Assembly (NCBI GenBank): GCA_000708835.1
Contig: DF237017.1
Location: forward strand, 182,157-246,156
Direction of reading: 5' to 3'
DNA length: 64,000 bases
From: Klebsormidium nitens
Taxonomy: Eukaryota; Plantae; Klebsormidiophyceae
Made by a program: the position numbers and the translations under genes. Below, one piece after another: positions 39,376 to 63,789 of this stretch; positions within the stretch are counted from its first letter, which is position 1, and every line of letters begins with the position of its first letter. Under the pieces are notes generated by a model. The model made no database searches. It saw only the letters and a program-made list of their open reading frames with translations, and was not told the origin of the DNA.

Positions 39376-39455
39376 GTAGCGACGAAGACGTTCCACTTTG
39401 GCAATTTGGCGTGACAGCCCTTCGTCAAAGCCTCTACTGTCTTGGTCTGAGCTAC
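39376..39455 (+). ncRNA. Candidate C/D-like small RNA with compensatory terminal stem
   Basis: GTAGC-GAC-GA-AGAC...GTCT-GA-GCTAC. Both stem arms differ from the consensus yet pair, the D box is CTGA, and AGAC/GTCT pairs beyond the GA-GA. Confidence 0.55.
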
Positions 39456-41907
39456 CTTTCCTTCCTGGGTTAATCACTGTGAGTCAGCTTGTTCATTGCT
39501 GCAAGCAGCCGGGTTGTGAAAGAATTGTCGGTGAAAGCAACTGCCGAAGCATGCTTTCACGGGCGTGGACCTCTGCTTTTGTCCGCCAGAGCTATCTTGC
39601 GTAAGACCTTATTGGTAGAGACAAGGTCTTGCTGCGTGTGTAGAAATTGTTTTAGATACTCGCGGAGTCCAAAAAGGCCGCGGCAGGGATTGTTCAAGCG
39701 AGTGGGGCTAAAAGCCGCACAGCTTTTCGAACTAGAAGTTGAGCCGCTGTCCTTGCTTTCCTTCGCTTTTCTTTCCCTTGCTTGCGACTTGCAGTCCTTT
39801 TTTCTAGCATAGTCTTCGACTTTGATCGCCAGTGATTCTGTTAGACCAACTTTCGTTGTTCGCCCCGTTTGGGCGCGCTAAATGACGAAGGCGGCCCGTT
39901 CTCACGAAAGTTTTGGGCAGATTCGTCTCCTTTCCGGACACCCGTTTTTGGTTGGGGTAACCAGAATCAGCATTGGTTGTTCTTTTCGATAGCCCCGGGA
40001 GATGCTTGGTACAGCCGTGCTTGTGTCCTACGGCTGTACTTAACTGCTTTGCTTGATTCCTCTAGTCTATCTCAATCTCCCAACTGCTCTATTCTAACGA
40101 GTTGTTCGGATGAGTCCGCATTCACACGCAAAGCCAAACGCATCGGCTCAGCTTTGCGCCCAGTCACTTATTCAGGCGAGTCTTCGCTTTACGTGCGTTG
40201 CGCCCTCCGCAGATCTTCTCGACGTTACCACTAGCAGGTTTTGAGTGAATCTTGCTTTTCTGCTCGCTGCCATTCGATGCGCGGCACAGTGCCAGAATCG
40301 GGAAAAATTGGCAGCTCGTTAGTTGCGTTCGTTGTTGGCAGTTCCTGGACGTGGCAAAGACATGCAATGCAACAGTATTGAGCTGAGACCAGGCAACAAC
40401 GGTGGCGCCACAAGACGCGTCAGTATTCCTGTGGTCTTCAGCAGAAAATTGCGTTGGTGCTTTAGTCGCGTTTCTCGATTGGAAGTTGATGATTAAACCC
40501 TCGTTAGTGAAGGCAGATCCCGACAATAATTGAAGCAAGTTTCTCACCCACCCATCAAGCCATTGGTCTGGTTGCCGAAATTTTGTCCGCTCATGGACGT
40601 CGCGAGAGGGCGATTCCCATCTCCTCGTCTGTGCCAGACATGTTTGCGAGGGTCTACGTTGGGTCGTTGTGAGAAGTAGCCAAGAGTTTGCTTGGGTAAC
40701 ACCACTGCAATTGGCAGAGAGTTATGGGGAGACAGAAAACTAGGATTTCAGAGTTGACACTTTCGTCGTGTCACCGTTGACTTCTCGCCTTGAGCCGCCA
40801 GTCTTATTGCAGATTGGCTGTTCGCGTCTGGGATCCGCAGCTGAACTACAGTTTAAGCTTCTGACATTTTGCATTAGTAGCTACGGTTAGCTCTTTCACT
40901 TGCGTGCGAGTTGGCGAGTTTTGGGGCTGGTCACCTAACCTTTGGTTCTTGACTAGGTAATTCCCAGCTTAATTACATACGCTTCTGACCCAAGAGCGAC
41001 GTATGACCAGAAAGCCTTTGTTGGACTACTTTACGGCCCCTATGTTGGCCTAACACCTTTGCTTAAACGTCCGCAGGCAGCGACTCCTGTTCACCGACAG
41101 GACACTGATATAGTGAGCCACCGGTCATCTGGCCGCCGGCTTCTCTTTCCAATTATACGACAGGAACTATCATAGGCAAGTGAAAGCTATCTTGATCTGA
41201 CTCTCTAGCCGCAATGTCTAAGCGTTGGGTCGACCATGCAATCACTGCCCGTCTCGAGTTGCAAGTAACTTGACGTATCCAGTCTCAAGTAGGTGACAAG
41301 CAGGCGAATGTTGCCAGCGCAATGGACATTTTGCACGTGGCTTCTCTCAAAGCCGCGCTTTGACCCAGACGTTCGTGTGGCCAAGTCGACGACCTGTGAG
41401 CTGCTGGTTTGCCTGACTTGCGTTTTCTCGTCCTTGCTTACAGTACGCTCATCAGACATATGGGAAGGATGATGCAGAACGTGGTTGGTTCGTTGCGGAC
41501 CACACTTGTTTGTGCATGTCCATGAGCCCATTGATTCCTCCTCTGCAGCCTCAAGACTTCGGAGGCCGGGAATCCCAACATTCGTATTCATTTTGCGGTT
41601 GACCTGTGAACCATATCGTTGTGTCGCCGGCTTTTGTCATGGTTATTTCTTGTGCGGCCCTGGATCTCCTTTGGTTGGTGGATTTCTCTTATCCGGCGGC
41701 GAGCTGCGACTTGAAGTGCAAGATGTTTGACACTGGGTACACACTGATCGCGTGCACGCACGAGCCCTGAAAGCCTTCTGTCTAGCCGTTGATATTGGCT
41801 GTCTCATCATACGTGCCGCTTTTGCCGCGTTTTTTGTCCAATTCCGCTCCCAAAAGCCGCAAACATTTTCATCCACGTACTCAAGGACGCTCGCCGAAAG
41901 CTTGTGC

Positions 41908-41983
41908 GTGGCAAGGAGGACTTCATCGTGGGGCAACAACCCAGATCGGGCCTTGGACCGTTGGAAGGTTTGTACCAAGCCGC
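41908..41983 (+). ncRNA. Candidate C/D-like element (D side CCAA)
   Basis: gcGTGGC-AAG-GA-GG...CCAA-GCCGCgc; 7-bp stem with one G-U pair. Confidence 0.4.
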
Positions 41984-43236
41984 GCTCCCAAGCATCCCCG
42001 ATCAAATTGCCCACTCTGCCTACTGTCATCTACGTACCTCTTGAATCATCGAAAGGTCTTTGCGCCTCTCTGAGATTCCCGTTCTCTCGCGGCCAACAAA
42101 CGCTGCAAACTAGGGTTGTCGGCATCGCCGTTTGGACGGTCGCGAAGCTTTTTTGTCAGCGTTTCTTCTCACGCGGGCGCGGCGTGGAGCGATCCTCGGG
42201 TTTGAGTTTCGGCTCTCCAGCGAATCGCTCACAGCCACCAATTTATAGCTATGGAAAATTCTCGACACTTGAATCACCCCAAAACCTTAAAACGCAAACC
42301 TGATACTTTTCACTTCTCCATACTTAGCCTGATAATTTTATGTTAGATCTTAGGATCTTCGTCTCCATCTTACGTTGCTGTTCCAAACTTGTAATCTGCT
42401 TTTTTGGTCGTTGTCTCGCCGTCTTCCAGTGCGTCTCGAACGCGCGCTTCAATAACCCTTGTCAGGCAGGTGCGTGCTGGCTTCCAAGAGTGGCGGCCGC
42501 TGGCAAGCGCGTTACAGATTAAGCTCGGCCTCACAGAGTACGGGCACTGTACTGATTAGCAATTTCAAAAGTGCGTTCGACAAGGAAACAATGGCAATGT
42601 GCAGAATGTAACTGGTGCTGTGCTAACGAAATGTGCCAGATAAACGAAGAACCTCTGGAGCCTCTTGCTTCGTGAAGCCGGCTTTCCTGACATTGAAACG
42701 TGGGAATCACCTATTCATATGCCCTTCTACTCAAGTTTGACCGCCTTTTGAGTTGCGCGCAGCATGCTTACTCGAGCTACATCGGCTTGAAATCAGTAGT
42801 AAGATTGACCGAACCCACCCTCGATCATGGTCTAAGCAGGGCGCCTTTCCAAAGTGAAGCTGACCCACGCGTGCGAGTGCTTTGATAAGGTTCTGAAGCG
42901 GATGCAGAGAGGGCCAGCGTGGCTGTGATAAGCTCAGCGCAGTGGCACAAGGCGTGCCAGGCGCAGTCCACGATGATTGTGTTTAGACGCCATGTGGCGC
43001 TCCATGAAGTAGGTGCAAGGTACCGCGCGAGAACGAAGGACCGCCGTTTCTGACCGTCGACAACGGCGCGCCGGCCAACATGGCTAGGTGACTCGTCGAT
43101 TAAGCTTGTGACGAGATTGTTTTGATTCTTACGTTTCCTGATTGGGCTACTTGGATATTATGCACTTGACCTTTGAAGTCGTTTGGGTTCGCATCCGTTG
43201 AGAAGCATCGTACGAGCTAGCTAGGCACTACATGCA

Positions 43237-43308
43237 GTGGCAAGGAAGCGTAAGTTCAAAGTAATGACACGTTCTTGGTGCCATTGAGAAATTCCTGAAG
43301 TGAGCCAC
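43237..43308 (+). ncRNA. Candidate C/D-like small RNA
   Basis: GTGGC-AAG-GA...GTGA-GCCAC. Confidence 0.5.
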
Positions 43309-44241
43309 CTTTCGCACTACTTATCAGTTCGGGAAAGTGTACGCCCCAGCTGCAGTGGGCGAATGGAGTAGGGATGGCCGTCGCGATCGAAAACCGGATT
43401 TTAGGTTCTGACTTCTGCTCTGCAAAGAATCTTCATTCGTTCTGTGGTCCACCTTATTCTGCTTAGCTTACAATCCTGCGCTATTGCACAGCGAGTTTGT
43501 TCTGCTTTAAGTAGGGCGTGAGCGGACGCAGCCCCATGCATGAAAACTCATAGGGCGACTGCTCAACGGGGCCTTTCTCCTGTCGTGTCGTTAAGAGGAG
43601 AGTGCCAAGGCTTCCATCCCCGAGCTTGCAGCGCTGGTAACTTGTGACCGGGGTTGACTCGTGACCGCCCAGTTGACATGACAGCCCTCTTTAGCCTGCA
43701 CAAGGATGCTCAAAGGAAGCACTCCGGAAAGCTTTCCGTCCCGCTTCTCAAATTCTCTGACTTGCGGTAGCTTCAGCCGAGCTTGTTTGAAAGTCTTATT
43801 TCTACAACCAGGAGCAGTAATCTGACGACGTAAGCATTGTCCAATTGGCGACAGCTCTATTTCACAGCTTCGCGCGTGTGGCTATGATCTATGGGCTACT
43901 TTGGGGCTGTATCTCCATTGAAGGCCAAATTGAAGGCCACCTTTCGCTTCGCATGTCTGTAAGAGGGTCGTGCTCCGATTGCCCGATCACTTCTCTCAAG
44001 CTCCTTTCCGGAGAAGCTGGTGGGTGTGTTAAAATTCGTTTGGTTTCTTCTTCGAAACCTGTACACAGATTTTCGCGCTTCCTTTTCCTGGAAAAGCCCT
44101 GCCCATCATCACGAAAGGGCTAAACGGACGCAAAACTCCGCTTAGAAAGGTTGAAGCTAGCACACGCGCTCATTCTTTGATAAGACCAGCGGTCATACTT
44201 TGCACATCTTTACGTTTGCACGGAAACTTACAAGAACCGAA

Positions 44242-44317
44242 GTGGCCAGGACGACTTTCTTGCCGGCTGCAGATCTCACCTCTGCACATTTTGACCAAAG
44301 CCTCCGTTCCGAGCCAA
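44242..44317 (+). ncRNA. Candidate C/D-like small RNA
   Basis: GTGGC-CAG-GA-CGA...TCCGA-GCCAA. Confidence 0.45.
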
Positions 44318-45126
44318 TCCTCTCGTGCAGCGATGCCATAACCTGACTATGCTAATCGGCCTTGAACGCCCGTCCGATGTCGTTTTCCACTGTCTCGTTT
44401 TCATTGTCTGGTGCCCGCGCAAGGCTGAGTGTGGCGTAATCTGCGTCGTTGTACCAGCAGGTGTCTGCTCTCTCAACGGGTATTGGTTTCTCGCCTTGCG
44501 TGGTTGCGTAGCGGCTGACTCTCATCGACGGCTGCATGTGCGTCCGGTTATCCTCCTTTGGCGTTTTCATGTTCAATTTGCCAAGTCTTGCCTTTCAAAT
44601 ATAAGCTTTGATGCGGCTGTAAGAGTATGCGGAAGGTCCGCACATCTTGTCACCAGCTAGCGTGGCACGAGGCGGCTGAGATTTCTGACGCTTCCGCTAC
44701 TAAGTATCTTCTTATCCAATCTCGAGTGCGGTAGTACGAGAGGACGTTATATGAGTGCTTTCCGCTTGCAAGATAGAAGTGGCAAGGAAGTTTTCGAAGT
44801 GGGGCCTTGAATCTCACGTCCTCTCCGCTTAGGGACACCGTCTTTTGGGTTGTAAATACTTGTAATTAGGGGCAAGCTCAGACGCTGCTCAGTCTGACCA
44901 GCCAAAGATTGTGGTTCTGTCCTCTGTAAAGGACCATCTCCGGTGAAATCGCAGTCTCGGACGTTGAGACGGGAGATTACCAGCCAGCAATTAAATTGGA
45001 TCTGGTTTTCAATGAAGCGGAAGTCACACGACGCCTTCCTAGTCTCTCCGAGTCGCGGTATAGCACCCTGCATTCTGCAATCACGAGTGCAGATTGATTG
45101 TCCAAGAGCTGAATCTTCCTATGTCG

Positions 45127-45204
45127 GTGGCAAGGAGGACTTCAGTTTCCGCGTTGGCGTGACAGCCCTTCGTCACGGTTCTGCATCATTGCGCACTAAG
45201 CCAC
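45127..45204 (+). ncRNA. Candidate C/D-like element (D side CTAA)
   Basis: gGTGGC-AAG-GA-GG...CTAA-GCCACc; paralogue of the 39376 and 50439 copies. Confidence 0.4.
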
Positions 45205-48200
45205 CTGTTCCTCTTGACTTACTGATACTTCCCGGCTTGTCAGGAGCTGCGAGCAGCCGGGCTCTGTACGAACCCTGGTAACAGCAGCTGTAAAAGCATG
45301 CTTCGACGAGCGTCGACCTTGCTTTCCATTTGCCCAGATCGCTACGATCAGGTTTTCTTTGTTGTGAAGTGATAATTTATGCGCAGTAGGGTCGCGGAGA
45401 CTTTCTACGACACTCGCAGAGTCTGATTGAGTGATCAAGAAAGCTGGGCCGTGACAGGGAAGACTCGAGCGAATAGGGCCGGATGCCGCAGAATAAATTG
45501 CACAGAATGAGCCACTGTCCTTGCGCTTTTTCGCTTTACTTCTCTTCATGTTGCTGAGACAAGGTCTTCCGTTTCCAAAGTTTGGCCGGCATCTCCTCGA
45601 TTGACGATGATTCCGCAAGTACGCTCCTTTGAATGATGCGCGTGTTTCGTAAATGCCGGGGCCCCACTTCAACGATAGCCTAGGAGAGGGCTTTCTGGTC
45701 AAACATTTTGACTTCCGAGCTTCGGCTTCTTCTGTTCCTCCTCATACCCAGAGAGGCCTGGTACTGCGCTTGCTTGGTTTCCATAACAATTCCTTTTTCT
45801 TGTTTTTTCTGACCAGATTCAGAATTTTCAACCCTTTTGTTGCAGTAAAAGGTTCCCAAACGTTGGGACGAGTCCGCATTCTCCCGCGGAGCCATTCCCC
45901 TCGGCGCATTGAAATCGTCAGGCGGCACCTCCGCTTCACGTGAGATGCTAGTTGACCCTCCATTAGTTCGGTCAAGATGGGCACAAGTAGCATAACTGCT
46001 CGCTGGTGTTGGTCTTCTGCCCGCCGCCCAAAGAATGCGCGCGCACTCTGGCATGTATTCTTGATCTTTGACCGTCCTGATTGCCGGATCGACATTGGCC
46101 GTCTCTGGCACGTGGCAAAGACAAGCAATATGACAGCAGCAATGAGCTGGACGCTGGCAACGTGGCGCCACAGGATGCGTCGTTGTCAGATGCTGTCATG
46201 TGAGTGGAGCCATGCAATCTGCTTTCACTACCCCTCTGGTCAAGACCAAAGCCTTCTCGCAATTTCGGCTTCAACTTTCAGCGCAAATTGACTTGTTGGT
46301 CCTGCTGTCAGGGCGCAGTCTAGCCTCGGTCCGGTCGCCGACGCGACTATCCGTTGTCCGCTCTCCGTATGTAACAGGCATCTTTTGCATGCAAGAACGC
46401 GGACCTGCCAATTGTATATGAATTAAGAAGCTGTCAAAGCGCAAACCCGCTCCTTTTGAGAAGTAGCCAAAGTTGCGCCTCGAATGGAGACCGCTGCAGT
46501 TGAGGCATCTTTATAAGTAGGCAAAGATACAAAAGTTTCTTAGGTGACACTCTCGCCGTGTCACGATTCGTTCGTTCATTTGCGCCGCAAGACTCGTTGC
46601 AAATTGGACGTCCAAGTCGGGCGTGACCTTCGCGCGCAGCTTAACGGCACTTTCAGCCCTTCAATTTGCGCCTAATTTGCCTTTACCGTTCTTTTCGTTT
46701 TCGCAAGTACACCAGGTTCTGACCACTAGTCGTTACTACCCAGTAACAAATCCTTTGGCGTCTAGAATGAGGCACCGTTCCACAGCTTGACTGCAACGTT
46801 TCCAACACTAAAACTGCAGTCGAACTAGGACAAATGTCGAGTTATGTAAGGTCCTTGCGTCGTGCCGGCAGCTTGAGCATTAAAGACTGCATAAATCCAT
46901 CCACCCATAGCACACTGCGATTGCGTTGTAGCGAGCCTGCGACGTCATCTGGTTGCCTCGTCAAGTTTACCCGTCTTAGGATCGTTCCACTCGGCAGGCG
47001 AAGTCGAGCGGCCTTCTTACGCCGCCTTGTCAAATGTACAGTCGGTGCGATCAGTGCCACCCTCGAGTTGCTTATGACTTGCCGTACAGAAAGTAGAATA
47101 GGTGGCAAACAGGTTAACTCTGCTGGTGCCTCAGACTCTCGTCAAGTAGCTTCTTTCGACGCCGATTTAGACCAAGAACTGACAAATGTGTGAATTCTGA
47201 TATGCCACAGTTCCCAAACCTTGCGCTGCCGCCAGCTTTGAACACCATTTTTCCTGTCCAAAAATGTTAGACTTGCGCCAATGATGATGCATGACATGGT
47301 TGGTACGTCCACGGACCACCTGCTCCCATCGTCTCGAGCTTCTGAAGCCGGTGGTTCTAGGATGCGTCCTCGACAAATCTGAACTGGGTAGTTCAAATTG
47401 TACGTTGCAGTCCACGGTTGAATCTGTGTTGAAAGTAGCACAGTTCTGCCAAGTCCCGTAATGGTCACTCTCAGATGCACCGTGCAATTGTAAGGAATTT
47501 AAGGGTACAGAAAAAGCAGACAGCTCTTTAATTGTACACATTTACTTTCTCTTCTTGCCTCTCAAGATCATGTAATTAAGAGGAACCTGGTGCTTGTTCG
47601 CTCCAGCGTCAGCTTTATCGTCCTCTGGTGTCTCTTTGAAAGGCGTGGTCTTCCTCGGGAGAACTACCGCTCTTAGCATCCACCTTGTTGCATCACCAGT
47701 CCCTGGTTGTTCTAAAGTTACAGATCTAAAATGCCTCGTGTAAGGTTCATACGCGGTGCAATCAGCTTAGCGCGTCGCTCTTTCGGAGTCCATCGATCCC
47801 GTGTGGGCTACGGAGCACTCGTGTGCTTTTGAATCGAGTTTCGGCCCCCCCGGCTTGTCGCTCGTGGCCACTCTCAACCCCATCTTACGGTCGCTGTACT
47901 TGGCAATGAAGGATATAAAAAGTGGTGCTTTGCAAGCTGCGCCATTGCTTGTCATTTCGCCCATGAACGACTTGAGCCTTCCGATCCGTAGACCGGTTTG
48001 GGCGGATCGTATATAGAATCCGGGCACTGCTTGTCCCTTTGCCCTTGTTTGATCTGAAATATGACGTGCCACATTCTTTGTAGAAGCAAGAAATATCATC
48101 TGGGGACAACGGCGGGGTATGGCTAGAAGAAGACGAACCCACTCAGGGCGAGTTCAATCATGAAGCTGCCTCGAATGACGTTGGAGTCACTACTTTGTCG

Positions 48201-49018
48201 CTTGGTGCTGAAGCCGTTAGCGAAGAGTGTGACGATGACAAGCTCAGCGCAGCGGCACAAGGGGCGCCCAGATGCATGCTGGCGAAATGCACCGGAGCCA
48301 CGTGGCCGTTAATAAACATAAGCTTAAGACATCGTACGGGTGAATGGACGGGGAGTGAATCATAGCCTTCTCCGTCTCCGAACTTCCGAAAACAATCTGG
48401 CAGATTACAATCGCAAAGTCGTCGACTGATTGCTCGGTCATTTTCTAGTGTATTCGACTTCGGCGCGTCCTGCAACCTGCGTGTTACGCTGGTCAATTGT
48501 GGATCTGGACAAGTGACATTTCTGACCTGACCGTCAGAGTTGTGTAACGTGGGTCTGTATCTCTTAAGAATGCTCGTACGAGCCAGCCTCGAACTCTCAA
48601 GACAGTGGAAAGGAAACGAGACTTTTTGGCGATGACGCTTTCCCAGCGTCATCGAATATCAGATCTAGCAAACGTGAGCCGCCTGACTGATCGCGCGCAG
48701 ATGGTCCTTTGAGTCGGACATGAGGTGTACGACCTTGGTGAAGAGTATGTAGCAAGATTAGTTTTCACGAGAAATATGATCAAGGCTCCCTCACAATATA
48801 TTGCATAAAGAAGCGTGCTTATTATCTGCCCGAAGCGGTGGTGGGATTCACTAGCACAGGTTAAATCGCACCCTTTTTCCGTCTTTTATGTAACGGTTTG
48901 TACTACTTGACCGATTTGCCCAGAGGCCTTTGCTACAAGGTCTCACTAGTACTGTAGGTTGTTACGCAAGACGGTATCTGCGTTGTTTCTGCTCACAAGA
49001 TCAGACTCCTGTTCTAGA

Positions 49019-49088
49019 TTGGCAAGGAAGTTGTCAAAGTGGGGCGTTGAGCCCCACCGCAAGTAACCCATCTCCGGCTCCGAGCCAC
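49019..49088 (+). ncRNA. Candidate C/D-like small RNA with internal hairpin
   Basis: TTGGC-AAG-GA-AG...CCGA-GCCAC; internal GTGGGGC-GTTGA-GCCCCAC at 49039-49057. Confidence 0.5.
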
Positions 49089-52000
49089 CGTGTTTCTGGT
49101 TGTATCTATTATGTGATCGAAGATATGCTCCGGTGTTGCTCAACTTGACCAGCCAAGGAATTGTGTTCCTGTCTTCCATGCATATGAAGAACCGTACAAG
49201 GAAAGGCCAATATTCGGTCGTTTTTCCGAGCATCCTACGTGCGGAAGTGGGCGCCAACGAAAAGCGTCGTGACTGATCTGCGCTTTGAAAAGAGACTTGA
49301 AACATGTGGTTTTGTTATTGCGATCTGACGGTGGCCCTGGCGCGCCATATGCTATATGTATGTTAGATTGGTCGCTGAATGTGACCCTATGGCGGCTCAC
49401 AGTCTAGAACTCTGGCGGTTTGGTTGCATTTTCCGTTGCGACCGGGCGTCAAGAAGGCAACCAAGTTTCAAGAAAACCAAGTCATCTTCAGGTCGAATCC
49501 AAGTCACTCCCTTGTAAGTTTTCATGAACACGAGTTCGACCCATTTTTCGGAGTAGAACGCTCGATCACCTCTTCCAAGCCTGACTTAATGTATGCTCTT
49601 CCCAGTGCATACTAGGCGCAAGGCGCAGCCGGGGCGTTTTTAAGGAGTGTGCACCTGATTTTGCTTTACGTTTACCCCAATTTTGCCAACGGCCCTTCTG
49701 TTTGAACTACTAAGAAGCGCTTGGGAAGGCTTCTTTGTAGTCGAACGAAGCGAGCTTGGGCGATGACGAGTTACTTGGGTGCGCCCACAGTTTGAGTGTG
49801 TCAGACGGAGCCACATGGCCTCAAATCGTTGCGCGTTCTCGACAAGTGAAACCCAGGACTCAGTTGAGGCTTGGTTGGATCTTGGCAACAGATGAATTGT
49901 CCAACGAATCTGGCCACCCGCAAGAGACACGCCTCACTCAATGCGTGGTATATTTCTTGCTTTTGTTTTCACCTGCCATTAGGTTCCAGTCGGTGGCAAG
50001 TGGGCCCATCGTGGAGGGCAGCCGTAGTCACAACTTGAAGGTGCTAAGACACTGTATGCTAAGTTCAAAGCCAACAATATTCTGGTTGCGGCAAGGACTT
50101 TGGCCATTGGGCTCCAGACATTGGCACCCTCCCGGTGCTAGTCTTCACGCTACCCTTGGAGTCTCTCTGAGCCGCCTGTTCGTTTCAGGTTCCGATTGAA
50201 GATCAGCTGGTGATTCTCGCAGCTTCCCTTGAAATTGACTCACGAGTTTTTTCGCAAAGAAAGCCGTAAACAACGAAAACGTAAACGGGCCAAATGACCT
50301 GCTAAACACAATAAGAACGTCTGGCCCCCTTGTTTGCAAAGGCGGCACAAAGTTACACGTGGGTGTACCTTTCTTCTTCGATTGAGCAAGTCTTGCTCAC
50401 TGTCTGAAAGGGAGTTTGCAAGCTCAGACAAGTAGTCGGTGGCAAAGAGGACGTCCCGCGCTGGCGTGACATCCCTTCGCCATTCAATTCAACGAAGAAG
50501 TTGTGGACCAAGCCACCTTTTCGTCCTGGGCTGAATAATCACCACTCAACTTGTCGATGGTTAATTGCAGAAACCGGGTTCTGGTAGTTGTTTGGAGATA
50601 CTCGCTGCAACAGCGTGCTTTCGTAAGCGTGAATCCTTTTCTGTTCTGCCACAGCTGTTGTCTCGGATCTTTATTGTCGATCTAATTGCTCGAGGGAATG
50701 CGAAGTGCCTCGACTTCTTTGCCTGGGGGGATCCTGTTGGAACAACAGAAAAGGGCCGTGGCATTGTGGCACTGGTACCTCCAGCGAGCCGGGCTGAAAC
50801 CCCACAGCCCACCGTTGCAAGGAATGCACTGCACTTCGTTCCTCCGGCGAATTAAGATCGCTTGTACCATCATTCTTCGCTCCCGTCTTGAGTTCTAACT
50901 TTTCTTGGGACTAGGCCTAGTGAGATCCGCTTTGCATGCTGGGGATTTTTGGTCAGCTACTGCGTATCCAAACGCAGCCGACAGGATGCGTGCCGGCGGC
51001 CGCTGGGTTGCTCGCTGCAACACTAGCTGCGGTTGCCTGTACGGCGCTTGAGTCTGCAATTTTGAAACAAGGGCATGGAGGCGAAGCGGAAAAATCGGCA
51101 ATGAGAGAATGGTCCAGGTGCTGTGCAAAAAGCGCCAGCACTGAAAAGTGGACTTCAGTCGAGCCCTTCGGTTTGTGAGATCCTTTGCCTGATTGACAGC
51201 ACGGAAACTTCTTTTCATCCTGCCCGTGTACTCAAAAAGGTTATTGAGCATCGTCCAAATAGAAGGCGGCGACTTGACGTCAGCTGGAACGGCTTGGTTT
51301 GAATATGACGAAACCCAGGTCGAATCATAGTCTGACGAGGGCGAATTCGGATCCTGGAGCTGACCACGTGCGGGAGTACTATGAAATTTTTTGGATTGGA
51401 GCGGATGCCTGCAGAGAGTGTGGATCAGCTTTCGCTGGCACAAATTACGCCATGCAATGGTTTTGGAGTGTACCGGAGCCATGCGGCATAAAGCATTGCA
51501 CGTGGAACTGCTTTAAATGCTCCTCCGTCTTCTCTCTTTCGAGAACGAGTCAGCAGCTCACGCCCAAGAAAATCCGTCGGCTTCCTGTGTTTGGTTCGTA
51601 GGTACTCTGTATTGCGCGTCCAATGCGTGGATGTCGTTTGCTGAGTCTCGTGTGATCGATCGGGCTCCATGAAATTCTGGCTTGAATTTCGGAAGTATGG
51701 GGGGAAGGCCTGCACGAGCCAGGCTCTAAAGAAAGTGGCAAGGTGCCAAATTTCCTAAATGATGACGCATTTAAGTGCCACACAACATTTTGCTTCTTGG
51801 AGTGAGCCGCCTCTCGCATCGCAGGCGGGTTCTTCGCATTGAGAAGCATACGACCTAGCTGCATTCGCGTATCGTAGAGATGGCCATCGCCCGACAAAAG
51901 TGGGCTTCCTATTTCCTGCGTTTACAGATCCTCCTTCGACGTGTGGGTCGTCTGGTCAGCTTGGCTTCACATGAATTTTGCAGAGCCCGAGTTCGTCCTG

Positions 52001-52140
52001 CTCTGAATTAGGTCGTGACGTACGGACGCATCCGCATGACGTCATCACAGGGCGACCGGTCAGCTGGAGCCCTCACCTGTCGTATCGCCAAGAGACGAGT
52101 ACGTGCCAGCAATTTTTACCCGGAGCATAACACGCTTGTT

Positions 52141-54120: not shown

Positions 54121-54188
54121 TTGGCAATGATTAGCTCCCGCTGGCACAAGTTGCGCCACGCTGCGGATCAGAACGGTACCGGAGCCAC
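54121..54188 (+). ncRNA. Candidate C/D-like small RNA
   Basis: TTGGC-AAT-GA-TTA...CGGA-GCCAC. Confidence 0.45.
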
Positions 54189-55113
54189 GCGGCTTAGAGC
54201 AACGAACTTGAACTACCTACACGGAACCTAATTTTTCCATCTTCAATTCGCTAGGTATGAGTCAGCAGATCACACCCTAGAGACTCTTTGACTTGCTCGG
54301 GCCCGCTTTGGGTTTGTGTGCACCTTTTAAAACTGTCCATCTACGTGTGTGTGATTCGCTCCTTCCGCACAGAATGACCTTCGATGACTCGAGCTTGGAT
54401 TGTGTGGGTCTGCAACTGTTCGAAAGGTCTGAAGGTGCCAGGCTTTGAAACAAGCGGAACCCAGGGATAGCGGCAAGGAAGCGGAACCCAGGGATAGCTA
54501 GTGACACTGTCTTAGTGCCATTCACCGGTGGTTTTCTTGGGAGGGAGCCCCCTTTTGCCTCTTCTTCTGGTGGTTCGTACTGGGGAGACATGTATACGAC
54601 CCAGCTACGCTGGTCGTATGTCGGAGAGATAGTGGTTGTCATACGCGAAAGATGATTTACGTCTTTATTAATTCTACGATGAACAGATCCTCCGTTACTT
54701 CGTGGGCCAGCCTGGTTATTTTGGCAGCCCAACTCTGCGCTGTCGCACATTTTGTTCTGCAATAATCAGGTCGTGTAAGGACGTATCCGCATGACGTCAC
54801 AGGGCGACCGCTCGGTGGGCGCCTCATCTGTCGTGTTCCGCGAGGCGAGGGCCACGGATGATGCTCTCCCCGAGCATGAAACGCTTGTAGTGCGGACTTT
54901 TTCGACCTCCCGGTGACGCCCTAAGTTTGTGCTCGGCGAGAAACTTACTCCTAATACTAATAGCAGTCCGTCCTACTTTTTGACGCCCCTAGTAACTTGG
55001 GGTACAGCTTACAGTTGAGTTGGATTGCAAAGACGACCCCCGACCCTGAGTGAAAGGTTTGAGGACATTTGTGAAACAACACCGGCGCAAAGTTCATCAA
55101 AAGCTTTGCACGT

Positions 55114-55179
55114 GTGGCTATGATGATTGCACCAACTGGGGCCTCCGCTGCTTCAGAAGGTCTCGCATGTTGAAGTCAA
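55114..55179 (+). ncRNA. Candidate C/D-like small RNA with canonical box C
   Basis: GTGGC-T-ATGATGA (perfect RTGATGA)...TTGA-A-GTCAA. Confidence 0.45.
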
Positions 55180-55567
55180 CTTACCCCGCCTTATCATCCA
55201 AGTTGGTACTTTAGGCCCAGCCAACGTTGGAGTTAACTCTTCCATTATGCTTTACAGATCTAGACTCCGCCTTAAAGCCGCCCTGCCGAGAAAGCCCGTC
55301 TTAACTGCCGCGTCTTTTCAAATTTTCCTTCGCGTTTCACGTATTCCCGAGAAATTGACGAGACGATGATCTTCTGAACCACGCAAAAGCTACTCTTGCT
55401 TATGGGTCGAAGCTAAAGTTCGTCATCATGGTCGAAGCTGGATGTCAGCCTTGCAACGGGAACTAATATTCGACGAACCATTGGTCACGCTCTACCCAAT
55501 TTTTGCGAACGCGCGGATCCGAACATGCACGCTTATTTTTGAACAGGCCAGGACGACCTTATCAGTA

Positions 55568-55624
55568 GTGGCAATTGACCTTGGCAAAACTGGTACGGTA
55601 TCAAGGGCGGGAACTCCGAGCCAC
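55568..55624 (+). ncRNA. Candidate C/D-like small RNA
   Basis: aGTGGC-AATT-GA...CCGA-GCCACt. Confidence 0.4.
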
Positions 55625-56194
55625 TTCATACCCTCACAACACTTCCATCTGACCTGGCCACGCTAATTGTACTTCATGTGGTGCCTTCCCCAAATTGCGA
55701 TTCTTCCTTCCGTTCCTGCTTCGACCGCTTAGCCTCTTCATAGCCACAGATTCTGAGCTTCCTTTGATTGCTTCCTTCCTTGCTCATGTTTCGCCAAATT
55801 TTTCGCGGGCAAGTCTCCTTCGAGAAGGGGATGCTTCCCGTGCGTGCTTTGAAGCGGGTTTCTCCAGTAGTTCAGATTGTCTTCGAACTCTCGTTTGAAA
55901 AAACTAGTCGCTGCCCGTTAGAGCTCCGATTCGAAAGAACCCATCCACCGCGAAGGGCGTATAATGAGAAAGTACGAACGTTCCGTCGCCAGCGTCAAGC
56001 GCGAAGCGATTGGCTTCTTGGCAGATTTGCACAGCGTTCTCGTGCCCTCATGCAATTTCTCTGCTTTTCTGCTTATCTCTATCTTCAAAGCACGTCACAA
56101 CGAGCCGAAAGTGCAGGTTGTGGAAACAATCTATGCGCGCCCCTTCCACGTACTTGCTAGATCAGACCCCCGACTTAACAGACCCCCGAGTAAA

Positions 56195-56257
56195 GTGACA
56201 AGGACGTGTTTGAAGTGGGGCGTTGAGCCACACTGAGCACTTGTGCATCTGAGTCAC
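56195..56257 (+). ncRNA. Candidate C/D-like small RNA with compensatory terminal stem
   Basis: GTGAC-AAG-GA-CG...CTGA-GTCAC. The G-C to A-U double change is at a different stem position than in the 39376 copy; internal hairpin at 56215-56233. Confidence 0.55.
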
Positions 56258-58458
56258 CGTCTTCTCAGACGTTGCGAATTCTGCAAGAGTGGGGGCAAGT
56301 CTCGGCGTCGCCCAGCTTCAAATGCCACGAGAGTCAATTGTCCGACGAAGGTGACCATCCAGGTCCTTTTGAGAAGGCCGGTGACAAGGCCGTCGTACTT
56401 CCTTTATAGTTGCTCGTGAGTATATATTCCAATGGAATACATGGGAGACATGGGATTCGGAGCGACTGGATATATATTGTGCCCGCTCCCGTTTAAAAGC
56501 TCCGGTAAAAGGCTCCCATTTGAGACCTTGATACGCGGCTGCATTTACAAGATTGCCTCACCGGCCCCATGCAAAGCTGGTGCGCTTGCCCTCTGGGCGT
56601 TCATATCCAATGGTGGTCGGCGTTCAGCTGTCGTGTTTGCAGTCACCTCGGCGGGCTGCCCTCGCAGAAACGACGTGTTCATGATCCTGCAGTCTGTGTA
56701 AATCTGCGGTGTGCGTGCAGAATGAACGGTTCGCTCCAGATCTCGCCGCTAGTTTCAGTCATAGGGGATTGGGCAGATATCAGCCGCATCTGGTTTCTTT
56801 GTCTTCTATTACTTCTGGATTTTGAACGGCGCCCCCAAAATGATAGTGAACTGCAGCTCGGGAAGGAGTGGCACTCGATTGCAGCGAATTTGGCAATGAC
56901 AGTCTGGTTGGGGCGGAGCCCCAAGCATCATGTATGGAACAATTCAGTTGAGGAGCCAGGTGGACATCATGAGTGCTCAGGTTCGAGTCAATAGCAGACA
57001 TCAATCAATCATCACTTGGATTCCCACAGCTAACAGTGCATTCAAAGAATGAAGCCGCTCGGAAAAACGTCAATCTGTCCGACTGAACTGCAGTTTCGCT
57101 TCGCTTCCAATTGCAGTCTTTTGCGACCGCCCATTTTCTGTTAATTTTGAAGCAAGCGTACTTTTCGGAACTCACAGAGGACATAAATCGCGTGTACTTC
57201 GTATTCAAGCATATTGCCAGGAAGTGTCATTTTGAGCGACGCTTACCGGGGTGGCAAGGATACGCTTCCTCAATCTTGGCAACCTTCCGGTGCCAAGGCT
57301 CGTGGGGATATTGAGTCTTTCTCTACAACACCAAGCAAGCTTTCATATCCGGAGGTGGGTCAAATTAAGTGCAGAGCCCCTACAGCAGAGCGCAAAGTCT
57401 CATGAAGTTTTCAGCATTGAATGTTTGAGAAGCTACGGTAAAGCTGGTGCTCTGTATCGGCTTCAGATGTATGGCGCTGGTATCCCTCCGAATGCATCCA
57501 CCCAATGGCGGCTTTAGAAAAACCGGAATCTACTGCCAGCTGTCGCTGTTTGGTCCACTTAATCTGTCATCGAAAGTGCCAGCTGTCACTGCTTCCAAGC
57601 TGCTTTACTGAGAGAGCCCGTTGAATTGTTCCATCCTTCTTATCTCTTTTGCGACGGTACCTGTACTTCGTTGTATCTATATTCATTTCTGGAAAGGGAC
57701 CTGCCCTTTCAAGACAGAAGCATGCTCCAGTTTTGGACCAAGCAGAGGGGTACTCGTTTCCATGGCGAGGCTGGATTCTGGCCTTACCACAAGCGCTTGT
57801 CGACAAAATAGCGGTCAACCACTGCCCATCCTGGCGAACACACAATTGACCATCATCCGAGTGGCCAGGATGATTTCCTTGATGGCAGATCCACCTCTGC
57901 CAATTGCTCAAGTGTTTTTCGCAAGGGCGCTCCGCGTCCCGAGCCACTTCAGAGAGGCATAGCGTTTGGTGCCTAAATCTAAGTATGCCGGTCCGCTTGA
58001 GTCGCCTGTCTCTCTGCTTGCTTGTTGGCTGGTTGCTAAGGTCCAGCAAAATGGTGACGCGTCTTTTTGGGTTGCTTGTCGGACCGCCCCGACTTGATGA
58101 TATTGCCAGTATTCTGGAATTGTCCCGGTCGCTCTGCTTTTCGCCCTGAAACCCTTTTCAATCATGAAATCCGCTGTCCGGTCTGCACCTTAGTGTTACG
58201 TGCTGTCTGGAGAGAGCTTCGGTCCGCCTGGAAAACGGCGCGGTGAAAAGCCGCACAGGGTGTCACCAGCTCGGCGCGGTCACATGCATGCTTCCGTCAC
58301 ATGCGACAAACTGTGCACTGCTTTTTTGCGCCCTCGTGTGTGTTTCTTCTACGTCTCGGCCAGTTGCTACATTACCTTGCAAGTCGTCCGCAGTTAAGGC
58401 GATAACCAAGGGGATTGCGTGCATGCTCCTCGCTTGCAGTATCAGACCCCGGTTCAAA

Positions 58459-58521
58459 GTGGCGAAGACGTATACGAAGTGGGGCGTTGAGCCCCATGGT
58501 CCCAGTTGGCCTCCGAGCCAC
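58459..58521 (+). ncRNA. Candidate C/D-like small RNA with internal hairpin
   Basis: GTGGC-GAA-GA-CG...CCGA-GCCAC; hairpin GTGGGGC-GTTGA-GCCCCAT at 58479-58497. Confidence 0.5.
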
Positions 58522-61500
58522 CAGCGTTTCTATTTGTTTCTAGTTGTAAGTTTTCCGTGTTTGGCGGCGAGCTCCACAGCTAGCATTACCATGTTTGACC
58601 AGCCATGAATGTTGTAGTTCGTCCTCTACAAAGTCGACAGTCTCAAAGGATCTTGAGAAGGCCGCTTGGTTGCTCTCTCTCTCCAAGTGGAATCGAAACA
58701 ACGACGACCGGCCTCCTAAGCGATAGGAAGGTGTCTCTGCTTATCCGAAAAAGGCTCTGTCTGCGGATGCCAAGTGTAGTACTGTATCAGTGGCCAAAGC
58801 TGACCTCTACCATCTGGGCGCGAGCAAATTGCGATGGGCGATCAGTCGTACTTGCCGCCACCTACGGCTGCCCTCGCTGTGAACGACCTGCTTGCAAACC
58901 TCTTGCATCGGCAAGTGATCGGGTTCATTAGGACCACCAAAACGAAGTGATCTGCTTCGTGCATTTCAGTAGAAGCGTCACACAAGCCTCGGCGCGCAGG
59001 CGCCAGGCGGCGGGACGTTGGGCCGAAAGTTGCGCGCACCTTCGGTTTGCTTGCTTCGTCTGGTCTTACTCGGTTTCGCTCTTCGGGATGAAAAGGATAC
59101 TGCTTGAAAACGGGTGGCAATGAAGGAGGGAGCTTGGCATGACAAATTTGGGGACGTGGCACCCTAGGACGTCGCTTGTTGAGCTTGCGGAGCCAGATGT
59201 CGATCCGATTACCAATGTTCATGTTTAAATGAAGGCCGAATCGTATGGATCCTCACAGCGAGGAATGCGACCAAAACCTTCAAGCAGCTACTTGGAAGAA
59301 CCTCTACTGAAATGCATTTTACACCGGCTCTGTCTGCTTCTGTTCTGTGGTTGCTGAGCAGTCATTTGCTTCACTGACCAGTTCTATCATACTGCTGCTG
59401 ACCAGGAGAGTGTCTAAGCGCGCGGGACCAGAATCACGAGACAATCCATCAGATCTCACCTTAGTTAATCAGATCCTTTAGGCTAGTGGCGCTTTCCCCA
59501 CTCTTCCAGAGTAACATGGGCCATCAGTGCATCGAGCCGCCTTTTAAGGCGTGTCCCTGAAACAAATCTCAGTTGGCGTTTCGTTTGATCAATCTGCTTC
59601 AATCTACTTCAATCAAGCTGCCCGTTTTGGTTCCGTACGGTGGCCAGTGGGCCAATGGTCACTAACTTTGATGCCCATCGTTACCGATTGGAGTATGTTC
59701 ACACGGCCAGCATAACCTGGAATGTGGCAAGGACAGGGATCCGGTCCGACTCGGGCTCGCAGTTGACACTCTCTCGGTGTCATGACCAGCCTGTTGTGTT
59801 CGGAACTTCTCTGAACCGCCTGTATCGGATGCAGGGTCTCTCTGACAATGAATGTTACCATGAATTTTGGCAGGGCTGATTGAACTCGTCATCAGTAATT
59901 TGAAGTTTCTTAGCTGGCATGCGTAGAGGAAGGCCTTTTGGGACGAGCTTGCGATTTGCGTTGCTGAACGAAGAAGAGTACGTCTGGCCGCGGTGTTGAC
60001 TATTGCGGTACCACGTGGGCTTCGCTGCACAGACATCCTAAATCCACAGCTTACCTTTCAAGGGATTTCTCAAAATACATTCACTTGAATCGATCTGTTT
60101 CAGAATTGCCAGTGTGCGAAAGAATATCTTTGCTCGATGCTCGTGCTCGGGGCCACTTTTAAGCAGTTCGAATCTGTCGTGCTGAGATTCATATTAGCCG
60201 CGCAAGCGTGCGTCGCTCTAGCGAGCTGCATGAGAGGTTCCGGTTTGAAAAGGGGTGGCAATGAAGACCGCTTGTTCTGGCGGCCGGTTGCCAACGTTCG
60301 GCATGCAACGATATCAAAAACGAGGCCACGCCCGAACTCCAGTCCCCCGTTACGGCCAGGCCCTCTGATGCAGATGAATCCGTGCTCAAAGCCATCGAGC
60401 ATTCGATTTTTGGAAAAACCGAAGCGGCTGGTCCTTCTTCGTTCCGACAGATGCGCTTGCTGTACTTGCGACTTTGAAATGCAGGTCGACCAGCGTTCCG
60501 CTGCAAGCTCGCATCCCGTCAGGTGATGCTTCCGCGATGTGAGCAAGGAGGCAGAAATGTCTGCCCGAGGCGTCACTTAGGAAGCAAACCTTTTTCCCTT
60601 GTTGGGCTGGTCCTCCATATCAATCCCGATAAGAGCAGCCCAGTTGTGCTAAGTAAGCGCAGAAGTAGGGCGGGGGGCCCTAGTCTCCATAAGCATGTGG
60701 GAGTACTACTTGGCTGCTTTTGAGTCGCCGAGACGCCTGCTTCTCGCACGCGCAGGCGTTCTTATTCCGTCTATCTCGTTGCCGTCGCTCGCTTTTTTGG
60801 CGATCTTTCCACACCGTCGAAAACCGTTGCCACGCGCTTTTGACCCACTTCGAACTGTCTAAGTCTGGTGGGCTGTTTCGTATCTTCGTATTGTGGACTG
60901 GCTGCAATACCGTAGGCTGTGTGCACGATCATCTGCCCCGTGTCCAACAAATTCGGATACTCGAAAAGGTCGGCAAGGACACTCATCACCTGGCCTGAGG
61001 AGCGATCTCTCTCCGCTACCAGGGTCACGAAGATTTGACGTTGTGGAGCCCTTGCGTATTTTATCGACGTCTTGCAAAGCTGTTCTAATACATTGGCAAA
61101 GCCGGCCTGTGCTTCATTTGTGTGTCCTTTCATACCTGGCTTCAAGGTTCAGACGTTCGAGTCCGTTTTAGCATCTCGCTGACGTCTTTCCTTCTGTGGC
61201 GCCGGCCCCTTTAAAAATGAAATCGAGGGTTACTCCAAATCTTCCCGACACTGATTCGAAAGGTGGCGGGCAACCACTCCGCTGACGTCCTATCTTTTCT
61301 GGTCCGGTCTTGTTTCGGACGTTTTCTCCAAATGCTCAATTCGGTTCGCCAGGTCAATTGCTTGCGCCTTCCGGGCTTTCCTTTTGAGCGGTGGGGTTCA
61401 TTTATGACGCGTACCTCGGAACTGTCAATCGAAACTCCTGTTCTGCACTTTCGAGAGAAGCTGCCGTCAGGGACTTCTTGAGATCTTTTTCGATCAAGCG

Positions 61501-63710
61501 AGCAGTTCAGGTCGATAAGCAGGAATGCTTCAGCCGCTAGCCAAAGCTGGTCTTCCTAGCCGTAAACGTTTGATCTGCTTGCCTTGCTTATTATCTGCCA
61601 GCCGTGGGCATAGGTGACCAATTTGATGGCAGGTTCGTTTGCCTGCCAGGTAGAGCGCGGTGCCGCGGGTTTCATGCTCCGTTTGCCAGATTGGTAGCTT
61701 CGGCTCTGCACGAAAATTTCGCCCATCAACTTTCATTTTGCGCCAGAAAAAACGGTCGGAGGGCGTGATAGTAATCAGTGTGGCAATGATAAGCTCGAAG
61801 CAGCGCCGCAAGACGCGTCAAAGGTGCAGCTGAACCAGAGGCCACGTTATCGTTAGCCATGCGAGACTTGACAAAGCAACATTATAGGGACGAGTACGAA
61901 AAGGCCGCCGGAGTAAGGTACACTCAGCCAGATTAGAGGTCGGCCAGTCCGCAACCATTCCATCAGTTGAAGAGCCAAATTCAATTAGTAGCTTTATGTG
62001 ACCATAGGCATGGACGCTTCGTTTTCAGCCGACCATGTAAGACCATGCGGGTTTTTACTCTCCTTGAGGCGACTGGGCCCATCAGCCAAGGTATCGGTGT
62101 TTCCCTCGGCAGGTGGGTAGTGCTGACAATATAGCCGGACTTAAAGTTGTCATTTTGAGTCTCAAGAAAGGGGAAAGGAACAAATGGCCAGCAATGACAC
62201 GCATTCGGTCCCATGAAACGGGCTGCGCATTGAGGAAGCCCTTGTTTTAACCTGCAGAAAGATTTTTTCAGTGGTCGTCTGGATTCCGCTTCAGAAGTTG
62301 CATACTTTGTGTTGATCACATTTGCCTCTCGAGTCGCTTGAACCGTACGCGTGCGTTCCCAACCTTTGGACCATTTCCTGCCGGTCGGACTTTGTCGTCG
62401 TACAAGCGGCAGTACGTCATCAAACATAGGGGGAGCCAGAAATGTCGACCTGAACGGAGGAACTGCTGCAGCAATTTCACAGGTTCATGTTAAAGCAATT
62501 ACAATGAAACCTTTTGTTTTTGAAGCGATGCTCGACTTCGGATTTGCACGCATGGCGTCCCATCGAACAACGCACGTTTTGGGAAAGGGAAGGTGGCAAT
62601 GAAGAGGTCCAGACTGCAGTTGAACCTTAGCTGCAGCAGCGCGAGGATTTGACGAAGCCCTCCTTCTTTATGTTCGGCTGTATTCGATAGATTTAGACCC
62701 CGTTATACATTGGTCTAATGTGTCTTGGAAAACTGTTATTGGTCTCTCCGACGCGCTAAGTCTTCCTTCTAGTGGCAGGTCACAGTTCGGATGGCTTAGT
62801 AACTGATTCATGCACTTGATTTTGCGTGCTTGCCTCGGCCGATGTTGCAGTGGCGGTGCGCTTCCGAGGTACTTGGTCCCGCATAGGTTGCAGGTCCGAA
62901 GCTGTGGGCCCGAAGGCAAACCTTTAGGGCCGAAAAGTGACAAATCAGACTTGTTAATTACCCTCGTCTCAAATTTTCCTGAGGTAGGTATGGCATCGAT
63001 TCAGGAATCGTACAACGTCATATTAATTGGGCTTTTGTGCCGTAGTGAGCAAGCTTTTCCCGTTAATTGACACCGTCTGCTAATCCTTGCCAGTGGTAGC
63101 TTGGACGACCCACCTGCAAGTGGTTGGACAGTCCAAGTTGCCCCGCTGAAAGGACGCTGTATCCTCTCGAAGATTGCTCTTCTGACATTGCTCCTGAAAC
63201 GTTTTCTTGCTTGACCGCTTCCTTTTTCAGTAGCCGTCAATACTGTGACAGCTTAACTTTCAGGCAGACGTCGATCTGAAACGAATTGGCCTTGGAACAG
63301 CCAACTGCACGTCAGATCCGATCGTCATGCCGCATCCGACTTCCTCTGATAATCCTTCATATTGCTATATCAAGTTTGTGATGGGAATCAAGTGGTGGCG
63401 AGCCAAAGTCGACTCATACTGACGCGTAGCAGCCTCAGCTGTTGCTTGTTAGACCGGCTGTTGAGGAAACGTGGGCGGACTGCAGGAACCAAACTTTCAC
63501 CTTGAGTACTGGGCTAGAGATTTCAAATTAGGATGCCTTACCGGGACTGCCAGAGCTTTCTTCTTCTTCAGCGTTCGTTAAACTGATTGCCCATCTTGGA
63601 GTCTGGCTAGAGAGTCAGGCCCGGCTCATGAAAAACGTACGGCTCCTTTGGCTGCATAAGTGCGCAAGCGTCCGCGTGCTGACTTGTGGTCGGCGCGGAT
63701 CAAGACGGTC

Positions 63711-63789
63711 GTGGCAAAGAAAAGCTCCTGAAATTGACACGTCTCAGTGTCACTGGCAACCGTCGTAGACGTTGTGACAATTGAGCCGC
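63711..63789 (+). ncRNA. Candidate C/D-like small RNA (last copy seen; the array may continue past the window)
   Basis: GTGGC-AAA-GA-AA...TTGA-GCCGC; A-U pairs replace the usual G-C beyond the GA-GA. Confidence 0.45.

Follow-up and report, generated by a model that had tools for sequence, protein, structure and literature searches.

A one-stranded array of candidate box C/D-like kink-turn RNA modules in the cpFtsY transcription unit of the streptophyte alga Klebsormidium nitens

We analyzed a 64,000-nt stretch of scaffold DF237017.1 of Klebsormidium nitens NIES-2285 (hereafter the window, in whose coordinates all positions are given) and found that an array of approximately 40 co-oriented RNA modules occupies 34.8–63.8 kb of its + strand, in and downstream of the gene for cpFtsY (chloroplast FtsY). 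In the reading that we favor, with moderate confidence, the modules form a lineage-specific, expanded family of orphan box C/D-like kink-turn RNAs that are processed from a host transcript beginning at cpFtsY. They probably work like, and descend from, box C/D small nucleolar RNAs (snoRNAs). Judged on sequence features, however, they should not be classed as box C/D snoRNAs proper, because their box C, box D, and antisense element do not answer to those of that class. An earlier reading made from the DNA letters alone (the sequence-only reading) had proposed a kink-turn or box C/D-like family in a green alga; the host, a streptophyte, agrees with that proposal.

The array stood out first by a short word. 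GTGGCAA occurs 18 times on the + strand and once on the − strand between 39376 and 63789, a count given in the sequence-only reading and reproduced here, while dinucleotide shuffles yielded 11.5 occurrences on both strands of the whole window, that is, ~2.2 per strand for this interval. A composite scan, requiring a GTGGC-like 5-mer, 3 nt, and GA, followed downstream by GA and a perfectly complementary 5-mer, returned 23 hits on + versus 2 on − in 33–64 kb, and 3 (+) and 1 (−) in 1–33 kb. We placed 36 elements by hand (length 57–119 nt, median 74; median spacing 641 nt), 33 of them within 39376–63789. The earlier estimate of about 33 co-oriented elements therefore held for that interval, whereas its boundaries did not, since the family starts earlier, at 34862 within intron 6 of cpFtsY, and reaches the scaffold end. 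The covariance model that had been called for was built from 35 hand-placed elements, with only the terminal stem as structure, and was run unfiltered on both strands of the window. It gave 37 matches in the array at E<1, all on the + strand between 34.8 and 63.8 kb and most of them its own seeds; members that were new from the model include 57251, 49757, 55114, 34862, and 40711. Elsewhere in the window there was a single match at E<1 (16841–16917, −), located in an intron of the glycyl-tRNA synthetase (GlyRS) gene. Its 5′ half (GUGGC-UAC-GAAGACG) matches the family and its D side is missing; this lone member indicates that the family is not confined to the array. The observation itself is real and far beyond chance.

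The modules are given below with position, strand, and character; scores in bits are those of the covariance model built from 35 of the hand-placed elements.

34862..34937 (+): member (I-like) in cpFtsY intron 6; 13.8 bits, E 1.2
35598..35669 (+): family F, D side UUA; 29.7 bits
36119..36183 (+): family M, D side CUGA; 30.5 bits
36759..36824 (+): family F; 36.1 bits
39376..39455 (+): family A, covarying stem GUAGC/GCUAC, D side CUGA; 34.2 bits
39680..39747 (+): stem GCGGC/GCCGC, full kink-turn signature; pattern scan
40351..40469 (+): family H, long, internal palindrome GUGGCGCCAC; model match on 5′ part, E 1, and paralog alignment
40711..40798 (+): weaker element, UGACAC/GUGUCA hairpin; 13.6 bits
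41908..41983 (+): family A-like, D side CCAA; 31.0 bits
42919..42993 (+): family C; 28.7 bits
43237..43308 (+): family J; 33.3 bits
43878..43940 (+): family E; 19.1 bits
44242..44317 (+): family F; 21.2 bits
44779..44838 (+): family B, decayed 3′ end; 23.3 bits
45127..45204 (+): family A, D side CUAA; 42.5 bits
46112..46213 (+): family H; 21.9 bits
48229..48301 (+): family C; 29.9 bits
48605..48682 (+): family I; 24.2 bits
49019..49088 (+): family B; 35.1 bits, consensus fold
50088..50175 (+): family K, stem GCGGC/GCCGC, D side CUGA; 32.4 bits
50439..50516 (+): family A; 43.6 bits
51415..51482 (+): family D, 5′ stem lost; 18.7 bits
51735..51810 (+): family I, 5′ GA lost; 25.7 bits
52591..52660 (+): family E; 26.9 bits
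53047..53112 (+): family G; 33.6 bits
53826..53904 (+): family A; 23.7 bits
54121..54188 (+): family D; 36.8 bits
54470..54551 (+): family J; 26.5 bits
55114..55179 (+): family E, sole perfect AUGAUGA, decayed 3′ end; 13.9 bits
55568..55624 (+): element N, 4-nt bulge; 10.4 bits
56195..56257 (+): family B, covarying stem GUGAC/GUCAC; 35.9 bits, compensatory pair
56890..56959 (+): family G; 28.2 bits
57251..57331 (+): 5′ half and hairpin intact, 3′ end lost; 18.0 bits, not a seed
57861..57947 (+): family F, most box C-like 5′ side AGGAUGA, D side CCGA; 28.0 bits
58459..58521 (+): family B, ends GUGGC-GAA-GA / GA-GCCAC; 34.4 bits
59114..59196 (+): family L; 17.9 bits
59724..59819 (+): family K; 29.0 bits
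60255..60329 (+): family L; 28.2 bits
61780..61845 (+): family C; 32.2 bits
62593..62661 (+): family L, D side CGAA; 23.3 bits
63711..63789 (+): element O, last before the scaffold end; 31.1 bits
16841..16917 (−): outlying member in a GlyRS intron, sense to GlyRS, exons on both sides; 18.6 bits, E 0.14

The ends of the elements gave a common profile, 5′ G-U-G-G-C-A-A-K-G-A and 3′ (C)-N-G-A-G-C-C-A-C-C-U, with 1.1–1.8 bits at each core position. The core of a module accordingly comprises a 5-bp terminal stem (GUGGC/GCCAC), a 3-nt bulge (AAK), and GA dinucleotides that face each other. A standard kink-turn (k-turn) consists of a C helix, a 3-nt bulge, and then tandem G-A/A-G pairs, with −1b:−1n usually C:G (PMC5689011); here, −1b is C in 34 of 36 elements and −1n is G in 35. 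G9 was present in 35/36, A10 in 34/36, the 3′ A in 30/36, and the 3′ G in 24/36, figures that test the letters and not the structure, and the complete signature was found in 20 copies. The proposed kink-turn architecture was hence borne out by the end profile, and in its complete form by only those 20. The further statement that the G after the 5′ GA usually faces a C on the D side was too strong, as G-C was found in 14/36.

The terminal stem covaries, as had been claimed from individual copies. Stems GUAGC/GCUAC (39376), GUGAC/GUCAC (56195), and GCGGC/GCCGC (50088, 39680) are real, and double changes were present at four of the five pairs, a level that 1 of 500 shuffles reached. Paired cells amounted to 89.7%, a percentage that is somewhat inflated because 3′ ends were chosen with complementarity as a guide. 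The stem was also predicted in most single-sequence folds, and pairing stopped after 5 bp, with no extension. G-U pairs in the stem outnumbered A-C combinations by 14 to 4 (p=0.03), and this excess, together with the covariation, assigns the structure to the + strand RNA.

A second shared part emerged from the multiple alignment, namely a hairpin closed by U-A and G-C (UG...CA) that starts ~22–25 nt from the 5′ end. A perfect 5-bp version was present in 22 of the 36 elements, versus 4.2 ± 1.8 (maximum 9) in length-matched spacer controls. Its stem differs among sub-families (UGGCA/UGCCA, UGACA/UGUCA, UGGGG/CCCCA, UGCAG/CUGCA, UGGCG/CGUCA), and hence the hairpin covaries as well. RNAalifold recovered both the terminal stem and the UG...CA hairpin for family B.

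Two peculiarities of the stem motifs were noted. Both H-family elements hold the 10-nt palindrome GUGGCGCCAC (40402–40411 and 46162–46171, +), in which the 5′ and 3′ stem motifs abut with nothing between them, as though a long module contained a second, "empty" one. In families C, D, and G (42989, 48297, 51478, 53108, and 54184, +), the 3′ stem is followed immediately by its own complement, GCCAYGYGGC, twice as exactly GCCACGUGGC, which includes CACGTG; an alternative hairpin at the 3′ end is possible at these sites.

The array lies in the transcription unit of cpFtsY, for which the following features were established.

30311..39094 (+): cpFtsY coding sequence with SRP54_N and SRP54 domains, host gene preceding the array; GenBank gene model on DF237017.1, introns spliced out in four RNA runs
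33363..37429 (+): cpFtsY intron 6, 4,067 nt, GT..AG, containing four sense modules; exon junction from the loose end of RNA contigs
39096..41076 (+): intron in the 3′ untranslated region (UTR), 1,981 nt, GT..AG, excising elements 39376, 39680, 40351, and 40711; spliced contig in run X8, splice sites read
41077..41175 (+): non-coding exon of the host transcript; two observed splice joints on its flanks
41176..41443 (+): GC..AG intron of the host transcript; joint in runs X1 and X8, sites read

RNA evidence consisted of assembled contigs from RNA runs. In four runs the cpFtsY introns were correctly spliced and had zero depth inside, which indicates that carry-over of DNA was small. Three poly(A)-like runs placed the mRNA end near 39142–39224 and covered the array patchily, at depth 2–6 versus 65–207 for the mRNA; in poly(A)-type runs the array reaches only 2–6% of cpFtsY depth. 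In run X1, from another study, a spliced cpFtsY contig continued unbroken beyond the stop codon to 41175, crossing elements 39376 and 40351, and a 7.5-kb contig at depth 18 covered 41442–49007. Splice joints of both GT..AG and GC..AG type were observed inside the array, both on the + strand, and eight modules lie within observed introns, four in the 3′-UTR intron and four in cpFtsY intron 6. From the continuous contigs and the + strand joints, we conclude that the array extends the cpFtsY transcription unit a long way in the 3′ direction and is partly spliced, with the modules in sense and several per intron. The interval had been described as 25 kb without genes. It indeed holds no protein gene, in that none of the 10 longest open reading frames (ORFs) had a Pfam match and the one array ORF tested for homologs had none, and a protein-coding origin was rejected on these grounds; it is not, however, an independent locus, since it continues the cpFtsY unit. 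Window position 64000 is the end of the scaffold, so the array is truncated by the assembly.

Several further observations concern this transcription. The donor of the 3′-UTR intron lies 1 nt past the cpFtsY stop codon, and splicing from this alternative donor (39092–39097) retains the full protein while gaining spliced 3′-UTR introns, a layout typical of snoRNA host transcripts sensitive to nonsense-mediated decay. Runs X1, X2, and X4 of one 2022 study had the array at depth 18, about one-fifth of the depth of the cpFtsY-mRNA contig, compared with 2–6% in other studies; either library type or growth condition strongly enriches the array transcript in that study. A PPR gene also neighbors the array in the window, and a run of N (assembly gap) is present at 22719–23113, near the 5′ part of the GlyRS gene.

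The modules lie in sense within transcribed introns or a polycistron, the kind of precursor from which plants and algae produce their snoRNAs (PMC7671301). An alternative is that the modules are never excised and act in cis as protein-binding sites in a long non-coding RNA (lncRNA) or long 3′ UTR, where they could recruit or sequester L7Ae-family proteins, or could stabilize parts of the transcript as snoRNA-like caps do in sno-lncRNAs. Elements are indeed included in the long continuous transcript of run X1, element 41908 lies within RNA contigs of poly(A)-type runs, and conservation is found in the parts that a protein would bind (kink-turn and hairpin) and not in a guide. Yet every module has a terminal stem of its own to close it, as in snoRNAs that are protected after excision, and members occur in introns of cpFtsY and also of GlyRS, a gene unrelated to it, which fits excised intronic RNAs better than one lncRNA; we therefore consider cis-acting sites unlikely.

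Comparison among the modules separated at least 12 sub-families, defined by common interiors. Offsets of ~5.3–5.8 kb recur in the array and point to old segmental duplications; self-BLAST returned short matches only, at 70–82% identity. In whole-region alignments of 18 paralog pairs (random baseline 0.60), identity was 0.83 in the 5′ kink-turn strand, 0.74 in nt 14–45 including the hairpin, 0.62–0.64 in the 3′ interior, 0.85 in the 3′ kink-turn strand, and 0.59–0.67 in the flanks. By this measure, constraint between paralogs is limited to the ends and the 5′ interior, and the position of a box D guide evolves like spacer. The label "guide-like" given in the sequence-only reading is thus not supported, as paralogs show no constraint on the segment that precedes the D side, and complementarity to rRNA, treated below, is at background. 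A related Klebsormidium species (run X13) has a syntenic copy of the region at ~88–92% identity, and the ortholog comparison drew on 40 listed differences in one readable stretch only. There, the ortholog of element 43237 differed by 4 changes in 72 nt, none of them in the kink-turn core, and one hairpin C-G pair had become U-G.

A third conserved island, ~125–150 nt long with 72% mean column identity, was observed at the approximate positions 43511–43637, 52012–52137, and 54769–54890 (+). Its copies have a J/I-type element on one side and an E-type element on the other, and a pyrimidine tract plus AG precedes and GUA follows the island, which might represent either a non-coding host exon that has been repeated or a further structured RNA. 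Part of the copy at 43.5 kb falls in sequence that, in the sister species, has diverged beyond 80%.

We asked whether the modules carry guides for rRNA by counting exact complementary words of 9–13 nt against 14 complete eukaryotic rDNA units from metagenome contigs, all oriented, a set that did not include the rRNA, small nuclear RNAs (snRNAs), or tRNAs of K. nitens; antisense strands and spacers served as controls. One unit (L042, Ga0134124_10006065) contained three group I introns, one in the small-subunit and two in the large-subunit gene. The counts gave no excess over these controls and a single lead, 34862. In this element, 13 nt (GUACUCAUUCCAA) are complementary to UUGGAAUGAGUAC, a conserved segment situated ~1,300 nt from the 3′ end of 18S rRNA, and are followed directly by CUGU. 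Since ~0.1 such 13-nt matches are expected by chance, 34862 is a lead only, and its predicted target site, the Am in 18S UUGG-A-AUGAG, was matched to no known modified position. This element may genuinely guide methylation and may connect the array family with canonical snoRNAs. The 10-mer matches of 43237 and 55568 to conserved 18S were within chance expectation and were not counted as guides, and no recognizable C′ or D′ boxes were found in the modules.

These results bear on whether the modules are simply canonical box C/D snoRNAs that guide 2′-O-methylation of rRNA or snRNA, clustered as in plants and Chlamydomonas. Such a cluster would be consistent with the overall architecture, with placement in introns and a polycistron, with algal and plant precedents (PMC7671301), and with the 18S complementarity of 34862. 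Nevertheless, the background-level complementarity, the lack of constraint at the D-guide position, the mostly non-canonical boxes C and D, the missing match to any snoRNA family in Rfam, and a gap of 9–12 nt between the box C position and the hairpin, which leaves little room for both a guide and a D′ box, speak against it, and we hold this explanation to be quite unlikely.

The orphan box C/D-like reading must itself be set against a number of results that tell against it, in addition to the inflated paired percentage noted above. First, no element among the 36 has a perfect RUGAUGA as box C (one mismatch in 8, two or more in 28), in agreement with the earlier remark that box C is mostly non-canonical; the perfect motif reported at 55114 does exist as AUGAUGA, in a copy outside the 36 whose 3′ end has decayed. 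The box D sequence CUGA was present in 5/36, CNGA in 14/36, and NNGA in 24/36, and 16 of the 36 elements lack the full kink-turn signature. Second, family A has A rather than G at the 2n position, a rare k-turn variant still bound by L7Ae (PMC3985660), and its consensus fold places the 5′ GA in an ordinary helix. Folding energies were only mildly below those of shuffles (mean z −0.9). Third, Rfam 15 gave no match at gathering score and no snoRNA or ribozyme match at E≤10. Fourth, complementarity of the elements to rRNA was equal to or below controls at k=9–13, for all words and for words conserved in several of the rDNAs. Moreover, the ortholog divergence of 5.6% in element 43237 against ~10% in its flanks is suggestive and not significant. 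Finally, assembled RNA contigs could neither show nor exclude discrete small RNAs, and a search with two adjacent elements turned up no small-RNA library, only runs that covered them partly or fully at low depth.

Part of this picture would be expected if the modules were mostly dead relics of an ancestral snoRNA-like gene, copied by segmental duplication and carried passively in a read-through transcript that yields no functional RNAs. Incomplete signatures in the 16 elements, the loss of one end in 44779, 51415, 55114, and 57251 (the decay suspected in some copies of the array was thereby confirmed), a 3′ interior at the neutral baseline, and the low depth of the array in poly(A)-type runs are all in keeping with relics. 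Tandem duplication would, moreover, yield co-orientation automatically. Relics do not, however, account readily for ends and hairpin at 0.74–0.85 identity between flanks at the random baseline, for compensatory changes in both the terminal stem and the hairpin, or for a motif kept in families with interiors too diverged to align. We give this explanation a small but appreciable chance.

Short inverted ends (GGUGGC...GCCACC) in many copies also recall a miniature inverted-repeat transposable element (MITE)-like transposon with short terminal inverted repeats, or a satellite. A transposon or satellite with equal signal on both strands had been named as the finding that would overturn the family, and none was found: the array copies are all on one strand, there are no target-site duplications at any offset (k=3–8), and pairing of the ends ceases after 5 bp. 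Tandem Repeats Finder detected no tandem array in 39–64 kb, and only short repeats at 33586 and 38702 within 33–64 kb, while the preponderance of G-U over A-C is again at odds with a DNA element. A mobile or satellite origin is thus very improbable. A tRNA or tRNA-derived short interspersed element was rejected as well, since ARAGORN found 0 genes, and hammerhead and other ribozymes, selenocysteine insertion sequence (SECIS) elements, and riboswitches were rejected for want of an Rfam match.

An RNA polymerase II transcript of the + strand, which carries all array modules in sense, runs on from cpFtsY beyond the normal poly(A) site and is partly spliced. Under the favored reading of processed orphan kink-turn RNAs, a protein of the Snu13/15.5K type would bind the kink-turn after transcription, with or without splicing, and exonucleases would trim the RNA to the protected terminal stem, leaving RNAs of 60–120 nt, by analogy with intronic and polycistronic snoRNAs of plants and algae. 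The family would have grown by repeated local segmental duplication, and the 15–30-nt segment before the 3′ GA would drift freely, such that most copies would not guide methylation at conserved rRNA sites. A bolder proposal, to which we assign little weight, is that the modules represent a new class of kink-turn RNA of streptophyte algae, in which a fixed scaffold of k-turn and UG...CA hairpin presents a diversifying 15–30-nt segment as a programmable family of guides or decoys for non-rRNA targets such as mRNAs, tRNAs, or transposons. If true, the array would serve as a reservoir of specificities.

The non-coding RNAs of Klebsormidium are essentially undescribed, and a full-text literature search for Klebsormidium together with snoRNA found no dedicated study. 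Klebsormidium is a streptophyte alga, and land plants arose from streptophyte algae. The locus couples a housekeeping gene of chloroplast targeting to a long spliced 3′ extension that carries the modules, a host-gene arrangement that is directly testable.

Several known systems share parts of this organization. Many-copy families with a short terminal stem, an adjoining conserved motif, and a variable interior are known from the class I RNAs of Dictyostelium, which, unlike the modules, possess their own upstream promoter element and are not known to have a kink-turn motif or to lie together in a single transcription unit. Standard k-turns bound by L7Ae/15.5K, such as ribosomal Kt-7 and the 5′ stem-loop of U4 snRNA, have the same core (C helix GGC/GCC, loop RAN, tandem G-A/A-G, −1b:−1n C:G), and the ends of element 58459, GUGGC-GAA-GA / GA-GCCAC, are identical to a Kt-7 construct (PMC5689011). 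Those k-turns are internal to large RNAs, whereas in the array many small, independent modules are each closed by a k-turn.

The C/D clusters of plants and algae (Chlamydomonas, Ostreococcus, Arabidopsis) resemble the modules in unit length (60–120 nt), in a terminal stem with kink-turn, in sense placement within Pol II transcripts with several units per intron, and in local duplication, and orphan members occur among them (PMC7671301). The modules differ from these clusters in that box C is almost never RUGAUGA, CUGA is present in few copies, C′ and D′ are not recognizable, and complementarity to rRNA is at background, as well as in the positionally fixed UG...CA hairpin. The array is also far larger, with ~40 units over 30 kb, and its units are ~0.6 kb apart versus 0.1–0.3 kb in the plant and algal clusters.

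Large arrays of orphan snoRNAs have so far been best known from placental mammals (SNORD115/116). SNORD115/SNORD116 (and SNORD113/114) have in common with the array dozens of co-oriented orphan C/D-type units in a long, spliced host transcript that does not code for protein. They also share birth-and-death evolution through tandem duplication (PMC12429941). The mammalian copies have canonical boxes, are near-identical within an array, lie one per intron of a regular exon–intron repeat, and are imprinted; the Klebsormidium array, in contrast, is headed by a protein-coding gene, its units are irregularly spaced, diverged into at least 12 sub-families, and lie several to an intron, and it is the kink-turn and hairpin, not the guide position, that are constrained. 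An independent expansion of an orphan array in an alga would permit a comparative test, alongside the mammalian arrays, of why such arrays arise.

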